64,000 nt of DNA from Pelomyxa schiedti (Eukaryota > Protista > Evosea), in contig JAHLWZ010000841.1 in the NCBI GenBank assembly GCA_020536535.1, positions 18,197 through 82,196 of the forward strand, read 5' to 3'. The notes beneath the pieces are model-generated. The model worked only from the letters and a program-made list of their open reading frames with translations. It made no database searches and was not told where the DNA came from. The translations under genes and the position numbers were made by a program. Shown here in pieces: positions 50,784 through 51,080 of this stretch (positions are counted from its first letter, which is position 1; each line of letters opens with the position of its first letter).

Positions 50784-50791
50784 ACCCATAA
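50784..50791 (+). promoter_or_regulatory. DUSE-like element (ACCCATAA) upstream of an unannotated structured RNA
   Basis: Context CCGACCCATAAT resembles the U6atac element CCGATCCCATAAT; intergenic; +63 to +65 falls on GTG at 50847-50849. Confidence 0.65.
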
Positions 50792-50846
50792 TTCAGGTTT
50801 CGGGAGAATGTTTTGGTATATGAATCGCCGACACCGTCTAGAAAAT

Positions 50847-51080
50847 GTGGCAGCCGGGTGATGTGGACATCACCCGATAAACCTAAGTTGATTTACAACA
50901 AACGGGAAACTTCCACAAGAGGCAATCAAAACAAAAACTTGGGAAACGGTCAAAAGTACCACCCTCCCGAGACGTTCGACGAAAGTCCTATCACCGTACG
51001 GGCAGAGATCCCAACGCTCCGGAGTCTGGGAAGCTCGAAGGCTGGCAGCGGGAGTCTGGGCCTCTGCGGTTGGTTTTTTT
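50847..51080 (+). ncRNA. Putative Pol III structured ncRNA (about 230 nt), telomerase RNA candidate
   Basis: DUSE at the U6-like distance; perfect 10-bp inverted repeat 50855-50876; candidate template TAAACCTAA; possible pseudoknot; long 3' stem (GCAGAG/CTCTGC); T7 terminator 51074-51080. Identity is inference. Confidence 0.55.

Follow-up and report, generated by a model that had tools for sequence, protein, structure and literature searches.

A three-copy family of snRNA-type RNA genes in the archamoeba Pelomyxa schiedti and the question of a telomerase RNA

The closest described systems

Hinas and Soderbom reportedly dealt with non-coding RNA genes of dictyostelids that are driven by the upstream element DUSE. 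In these organisms the DUSE-driven genes include the snRNAs, the SRP RNA and the Class I RNAs (Kjellin et al. 2021, PMC7919456), and a "TGTG box" is known about 60 nt after the DUSE in Dictyostelium discoideum (PMC7919456). The telomerase RNAs of ciliates and plants are Pol III transcripts of a type-3 promoter with a USE and a TATA element (PMC12133305). Pelomyxa schiedti is an anaerobic archamoeba, and its genome is available as a single-cell assembly (PMC8887013). We consider a gene at 50784-51080 of a stretch of 64,000 nucleotides from contig C841 of this genome (hereafter the window, numbered from its first letter), which an earlier note had described as an unannotated, DUSE-driven RNA with the architecture of a telomerase RNA. 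The genome that we searched is the single-cell assembly of P. schiedti (52,367,397 bases in 5337 contigs; contigs are designated below by C and a number).

The gene is like the dictyostelid DUSE genes in that [A/T]CCCAYAA lies about 60 nt before the start, the AAATGTG of the "TGTG box" lies about 60 nt after that element, and the end is an oligo-T; as in dictyostelids, known RNAs and orphan RNAs specific to the lineage are driven by one and the same element. It is unlike them in its host, an archamoeba, and in the length of the RNA (225-900 nt, as against 42-65 nt for Class I RNAs, with which it has no motif in common). With the telomerase RNAs of ciliates and plants it shares the snRNA-type promoter, the oligo-T end, a hairpin immediately before a 1.5-repeat with CCUAA in it, then an A-rich stretch, a 3' stem-loop and the presence of TERT in the genome. 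It differs from them in that the predicted telomere repeat is not found, there is neither a U-rich loop nor a triple-helix pseudoknot, the template can be paired, a stem of the pseudoknot is not kept in the expressed paralog, the gene exists in three copies (225, 645 and 900 nt), and no Rfam telomerase model matches it. RNase MRP RNA (RF00030) is similar in the promoter and terminator type of this genome and in a short GAAAGUC...CAGARA stretch like CR-I/P8; unlike RNase MRP RNA, the gene has no covariance-model score and no P4 partner.

The features of the window copy are as follows; all are on the + strand, and the paralogs are the copies on C614 and C816.

50785-50791, +: upstream element CCCATAA (DUSE-type), 62-64 nt 5' of the predicted start, identical in both paralogs
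50817-50824, +: TATA-like box TATATGAA, about 30 nt 5' of the start
50843-50849, +: AAATGTG, exactly at the predicted transcription start, present in all three copies
50847-51080, +: transcription unit predicted for the short copy from the promoter spacing, about 225-234 nt with the T-run counted in
50855-50876, +: 5' hairpin, 9 bp with a 4-nt loop, all nine pairs kept in all three copies
50878-50886, +: TAAACCTAA, the proposed template, 1.5 units of a 6-mer, identical in all copies
50888-50945, +: stretch with the proposed H-type pseudoknot, TTGATT/AATCAA and TTCCaCAAG/CTTGGGAA
after TTTACAA, +: gap of 3-5 nt in the window copy against the paralogs, from the alignment
50938-50939, +: site of the central domain of the paralogs, about 280 nt long in C614 and about 530 nt in C816
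50956-50957, +: site at which the long paralogs, but not the window copy, have 17 nt more
50981-51012, +: GAAAGTCC ... GGGCAGAGATCCC, resembling by eye CR-I/P8 of RNase MRP RNA, no covariance-model score
51002-51067, +: irregular 3' stem-loop in which GGAGTCTGGG occurs twice; no other block is as well conserved in the family (92-99%)
51063-51067, +: 3'-domain junction, where the long paralogs carry a further 140 nt or so
51074-51080, +: T7 run, Pol III-type terminator; the CGGTTGGTTTTTTTG end is common to all three copies

A family of three copies

The window interval is a genuine snRNA-type RNA gene, and its promoter and terminator follow the rule of known RNA genes of the same genome. Two of these are in the window itself, where Rfam matches define the starts of U6 (42585-42692) and U6atac (35083-35201), and CCCATAA lies 63-65 nt before the start in both. 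The genome search located the genuine RNase MRP RNA at C811:110023-110515 (81 bits) and the genuine RNase P RNA at C676:50003-50354 (91 bits), each preceded at 62-68 nt by CCCATAA or CCCACAA and terminated by a T-run. The combination of CCCAYAA 62-68 nt before the start and a terminal T-run is therefore seen in four of these four genes. The spacing of 64 nt from which the earlier note had put the first transcribed nucleotide at about 50847-50849 is the same layout, and both the element (ACCCATAA at 50784-50791) and the T7 run are in place. About 30 nt before the start, where the window copy has its TATA-like box and the paralogs have TATAAGAA and GATAAGAA, U6 has AGATAG and U6atac AGATAAG in the corresponding position. 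From TTTTATTCCGACCCATAAT to the start, the window copy and the two paralogs have almost the same promoter sequence, and the short copy contains no internal T4 run. Considering that the spacing of the upstream element is that of four known RNA genes and that AAATGTG lies at the start, we regard the gene as one of the snRNA type, transcribed most likely by Pol III.

Immediately 5' of the gene (window 50522-50773), parts of the sequence are missing or different in the DNA contigs of two runs (joints 50485>50609 and 50629>50774), and a run of 14 G is located there at about 50581-50594; this is either a case of variant alleles or assembly-unstable low-complexity sequence. An open frame of 107 codons over the gene was rejected as mechanical, the indels of the paralogs not being multiples of three and breaking the frame. 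Elsewhere in the window, a long open frame at 10683-14585(-) has VWA and VIT (vault protein inter-alpha-trypsin) domains and may span two genes.

When the short and the long form were searched against the DNA of the whole genome, exactly three loci emerged: the window copy, C614:79-727(-) and C816:74833-75734(-), with predicted RNAs of about 225, 645 and 900 nt, respectively. In the alignment, the promoter, the 5' hairpin, an A-rich core, the 3' stem-loop and the terminal T-run are common to all three, and a 26-nt stretch that includes the proposed template is nearly identical among them. The window copy differs from the long paralogs by the four gaps listed above, all of which are internal. 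Overall, the three sequences are 86-99% alike, and the parts retained in the short copy are 93-99% identical to C816. C816 and the window share only about 2.4 kb (window 48895-51262), and the upstream flank of C614 differs from that of the window; these loci are thus dispersed paralogs, not haplotigs. Outside the family the central domain was found nowhere else in the genome by a whole-genome DNA search, and it is therefore not a transposon. Two scans of metagenomes with two 22-nt conserved words gave no orthologs, and therefore no helix has covariation support.

The C816 copy carries a private insertion of about 280 nt (C816:75203-75483) with CTTGGA(A/G)TC on both sides. Within the insertion, a T5 run would terminate transcription by Pol III, and a GGGAACGATCAAAC motif, similar to the GGGAAACGGTCAAAAG of the family, occurs as a second one.

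We believe, with odds somewhat better than even, that these genes are an orphan Pelomyxa-specific family of the Pol III type and that the window copy is an internally deleted duplicate. On such an account, CCCATAA, the TATA-like box and the AAATGTG region would drive transcription from about 50847, likely by Pol III, and the T7 run would end the transcript. The window copy would have retained the promoter, the 5' hairpin, the conserved A-rich core, the 3' stem-loop and the terminator, and it would have lost the central domain, the 17-nt piece and the 3' domain that pairs with CCCACCCCUCCCGAGAC in the predicted long form. The loss of whole domains, including the pairing partner of CCCACCCCUCCCGAGAC, is the reason why we read it as an internally deleted duplicate. 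The short copy is accordingly presumed to be the derived one; the long forms could instead have gained insertions, and the segment of about 280 nt in C816 is flanked by a short direct repeat. The window copy is probably decaying, and possibly it is a minimal isoform. By our reading, the RNA of the family may serve as a protein-binding scaffold.

Expression and predicted folding

The RNA of the family exists in its long form. One 614-nt RNA-seq contig matches 50867-50929 and 50962-51066 of the window, with 281 letters between 50929 and 50962 and 156 letters past 51066; it is a long form similar to C614 and spans it from the hairpin to about the T-run. In this run, the rest of 49000-52999 has zero coverage. 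The library was random-primed, single-cell and from the same study. Expression is documented by one contig of one small run, and the long RNA of about 650 nt (C614) is most likely the working form of the family, since it is the only form seen as RNA. The RNA of about 230 nt expected by the earlier note was sought in the same data: RNA of the family is there, but the contig is the 614-nt long form. Assembled contigs cannot give true ends, strand or rare variants; for this reason, the short copy may be transcribed as well.

Three further runs cover all 4 kb evenly and behave as DNA. The short-form junction is present in their contigs 50867-51009 and 50870-51019; these runs come from the assembly's own sample and are not independent support for the short form, which is thus observed in DNA only, while the RNA seen is the C614-like long form. 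The DNA runs also reveal very high copy numbers at window 51814-51947 and 52216-52483, with a summed contig depth from thousands to about 20,000 as against about 5-30 around, and many loose ends at 52250 and 52340. A small dispersed repeat accounts for this, probably the MITE family mentioned in the earlier note.

The C614 transcript (642 nt) contains no TTTT, which is the case for only 5% of random 645-nt pieces of the window and fits transcription by Pol III. C816 has one T5, located inside its private insertion.

The 5' hairpin is where it had been described, with arms at 50855-50864 and 50867-50876; only 2 nt separate these arms, so that the real stem has 9 bp and the loop 4 nt. In C614 the hairpin has 12 extra nt, confined to the loop. 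The 3' stem-loop is likewise present at 51002-51067, and GGT..CCAC, with which the 5' end had been proposed to close, was located at 50948-50962.

The proposed pseudoknot fared less well. Its complementarities are in place, TTGATT (50888) opposite AATCAA (50924) and TTCCaCAAG (50911) opposite CTTGGGAA (50938), but they are short A/U-rich matches within an A-rich stretch; the first stem (UUGAUU/AAUCAA, stem A) contains, in the two long paralogs, an A·C mismatch that is not compensated, and CUUGGG of the second (stem B) has a stronger partner. Indeed, CTTGGG (50938-50943) can pair with CCTAAGT (50882-50888), with 7 bp in the window copy and 9 bp in the long forms. In the minimum-free-energy fold of the long form, this 9-bp helix CCUAAGUUG/CAACUUGGG closes the central domain and takes up half of the proposed template together with the CUUGGG of stem B; in the predicted fold of the short form, the template is unpaired or weakly paired. 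Loop 3 of the pseudoknot would contain 280-530 nt in the long forms. A U-rich loop that could form a triple helix is absent from the gene sequence, as had been suspected already.

The 224-nt short RNA folds no better than its shuffles (z -1.1; 27 of 200 shuffles are as good), and the fold of the long form beats all 20 shuffles tried (z -3.3). In the predicted long-form fold, the CCCACCCCUCCCGAGAC stretch pairs with the G-rich strand of the 140-nt 3' domain.

Telomerase RNA and the other readings

The genome does have a TERT gene, as the earlier model needed: on C931, PF12009 (the telomerase RNA-binding domain) matches in two exons, and the reverse-transcriptase motifs A, B' and C are visible downstream. 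A telomerase RNA is therefore to be expected in P. schiedti. A second U6 gene lies about 1 kb upstream of this TERT gene (C931:35196-35301(-), 102 bits).

TTTAGG is the telomere repeat of Cryptosporidium. For Acanthamoeba the repeat is TTAGGG (PMC11995660). In the 52-Mb assembly we found no match to (TTTAGG)4 and none to three TTTAGG units with one mismatch allowed. A 15-mer of 2.5 units has two matches, which represent one duplicated internal sequence on C389, and the claim that the gene templates (TTTAGG)n thus lost its expected product in the assembly. Telomere arrays of any kind were absent from the contig ends of the assembly. Short (TTAGGG)2.5-4.5 arrays occur at about 8 internal loci and at no contig end; the one at C1393:1672-1686 has an 18-nt direct duplication AAACTCTCTGTGTATCCC on its two sides, such as the repair of a break may leave. 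A generic scan for GGG-hexamers gave coding and microsatellite repeats only, and the control repeat (GGGATT)n is an ordinary microsatellite. The chromosome ends may be missing from an amplified single-cell assembly. The absence of TTTAGG therefore lowers the odds of the earlier model and does not settle the matter.

We also searched for other telomerase-RNA candidates by requiring a DUSE and then, within 58-179 nt, any 8-mer that covers a TTAGGG template. There are 61 matches, fewer than in the reversed controls, and at least two of them look like real genes of the Pol III type; these two, at C600:40598 and C612:16818, are DUSE-driven and contain the CCCUAACC motif. The former (C600:40598 onward, +) is about 210-240 nt long, has a second copy on C3309 and no Rfam match, and exhibits CCCATAA, TTATGAAAAAC at -30 and T5/T6 runs at the end; ACCCCUAACCG is found near +55, inside a long helix of a G-rich and a C-rich strand. 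Formally, it is a telomerase-RNA candidate for the TTAGGG repeat. The latter (C612, about 16590-16818, -) is about 160 nt long, ends in T12 and also has no Rfam match; long, nearly perfect hairpins are predicted for it (-82 kcal/mol), and its CCCUAACC pairs with an internal GGGUUAG.

Rfam searches at the gathering threshold and at E up to 10, with the window, a 500-nt interval and both long paralogs, gave nothing relevant, including the telomerase RNA models, for which such a result carries little weight, since a genuine but distantly related telomerase RNA would be expected to go unmatched too. SRP RNA, RNase P/MRP RNA and U3, which the earlier note had wished to see excluded in this way, are excluded by the lack of a match, and the real MRP and P RNAs are at other loci. 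The conserved core was also compared with the rDNA contig, U6, U6atac, and the MRP and P RNAs for antisense targets; only G·U-rich or A/U-only matches emerged. The small-subunit rRNA gene (C59:18787-23349(-)) has about 4.5 kb as compared with a model of 1831 positions and must thus contain very large expansion segments.

A (CCCTAA)4 locus on C1866 was tried as a fourth member of the family. It shares AACCTAAGTTGA and TTGGGAAACGxTCAAA with the window RNA, but it has no DUSE, and its tail belongs to the upstream or first-exon part of a family of protein-coding genes (C1660, C5085). The two shared words are located in segments that differ in origin. The likeness is taken as chance.

Several readings of the gene compete with that of an orphan family. 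In the telomerase reading, the hairpin is the template boundary, UAAACCUAA templates (TTTAGG)n, the pseudoknot lies downstream, the 3' stem-loop binds TERT, and the long paralogs are the same RNA with dispensable arms. The presence of TERT demands an RNA partner, and the 9-bp hairpin, stable and conserved, ends 1-2 nt 5' of the 9-mer, which is the position of a template boundary, its pairs being kept in three copies with no compensatory changes, so that this is weak support; chance alone should give a 3-nt repeat with the 6-nt spacing of the 9-mer about once in every 100 nt. The snRNA-type promoter and oligo-T end, as in the ciliate and plant telomerase RNAs (PMC12133305), the large tolerated changes in length, which would suit a flexible scaffold, and the fact that no Rfam family claims the gene are all in agreement with such an RNA. 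The tests, however, disfavour it. The assembly lacks the predicted repeat and has short TTAGGG-type arrays; in the long form stem A is mismatched and loop 3 would hold 280-530 nt, a U-rich loop is lacking, and CCUAAGUUG of the template region is engaged with CAACUUGGG in the predicted fold of the expressed RNA. There are three gene copies, and the "ciliate-like" one is the copy that was not seen as RNA; the telomerase-like architecture was read from the shortest paralog, probably a deletion derivative. Moreover, orphan DUSE-driven genes are not rare, two others having CCCUAACC, and the prior for any single one to be the telomerase RNA is therefore low. Taken together, we find the telomerase identity quite improbable, though not refuted. 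Alternatively, the short window copy could be a working minimal isoform, trimmed to the conserved core and kept by selection. In its favour, all four deletions are internal, no T4 run occurs inside, and every element from the promoter and start region through the hairpin and core to the 3' stem-loop and terminator has survived intact, with 93-99% identity to C816; nevertheless, the sole RNA contig is the long form with none of the short junctions, the short RNA folds like shuffled sequence, and the partner strand of the main predicted long-range helix is gone. We consider this unlikely, though a real possibility.

The suggestion of a very divergent relative of RNase MRP/P or SRP RNA starts from the GAAAGUCC...GGGCAGAGA stretch, as 50981-51012 looks by eye like CR-I/P8 of the genome's own MRP RNA (where the counterpart is GGGAAAGTCTCC ... 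GGCAGAAAGTGCC) and the promoter type and T-run are the same. It meets the objections that the genuine genes on C811 (81 bits) and C676 (91 bits) are already accounted for, on which ground the MRP/P identity was rejected, that all three copies are without a covariance-model match at E up to 10, and that no P4-type pairing partner is conserved between the short and long forms; the identity is largely refuted, and we give it very little credence. Finally, one may suppose that there is no gene at all and that a chance CCCATAA happens to be followed by a chance T-run. The element is indeed short, with about 7.6 occurrences expected by chance in the window, but it is enriched there, with 19 observed, and its presence before the gene is more than chance. 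Conservation of the promoter block at three loci, a spacing identical to that of four known RNA genes and a discrete RNA-seq contig bounded by the gene refute this explanation.

Under the orphan-family reading, which we prefer, the set of snRNA-type genes of an archamoeba gains an orphan RNA of about 650 nt that is expressed. The family occurs naturally at three lengths (225, 645 and 900 nt), and a comparison of these reveals the parts of the RNA that no copy has lost, a guide that will be of use when a function becomes known. If the telomerase identity were true after all, this would be the first telomerase RNA from Amoebozoa, with a Pol III/DUSE-type promoter, the non-canonical repeat TTTAGG and versions of 225, 645 and 900 nt, and telomerase RNA would then be made in the ciliate and plant manner also in the sister lineage of animals and fungi. 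The question also calls for caution, considering that at least three orphan DUSE-driven genes carry a telomere-like motif. In any case, the Dictyostelium-type upstream element is a practical key to the RNA genes in the P. schiedti genome.
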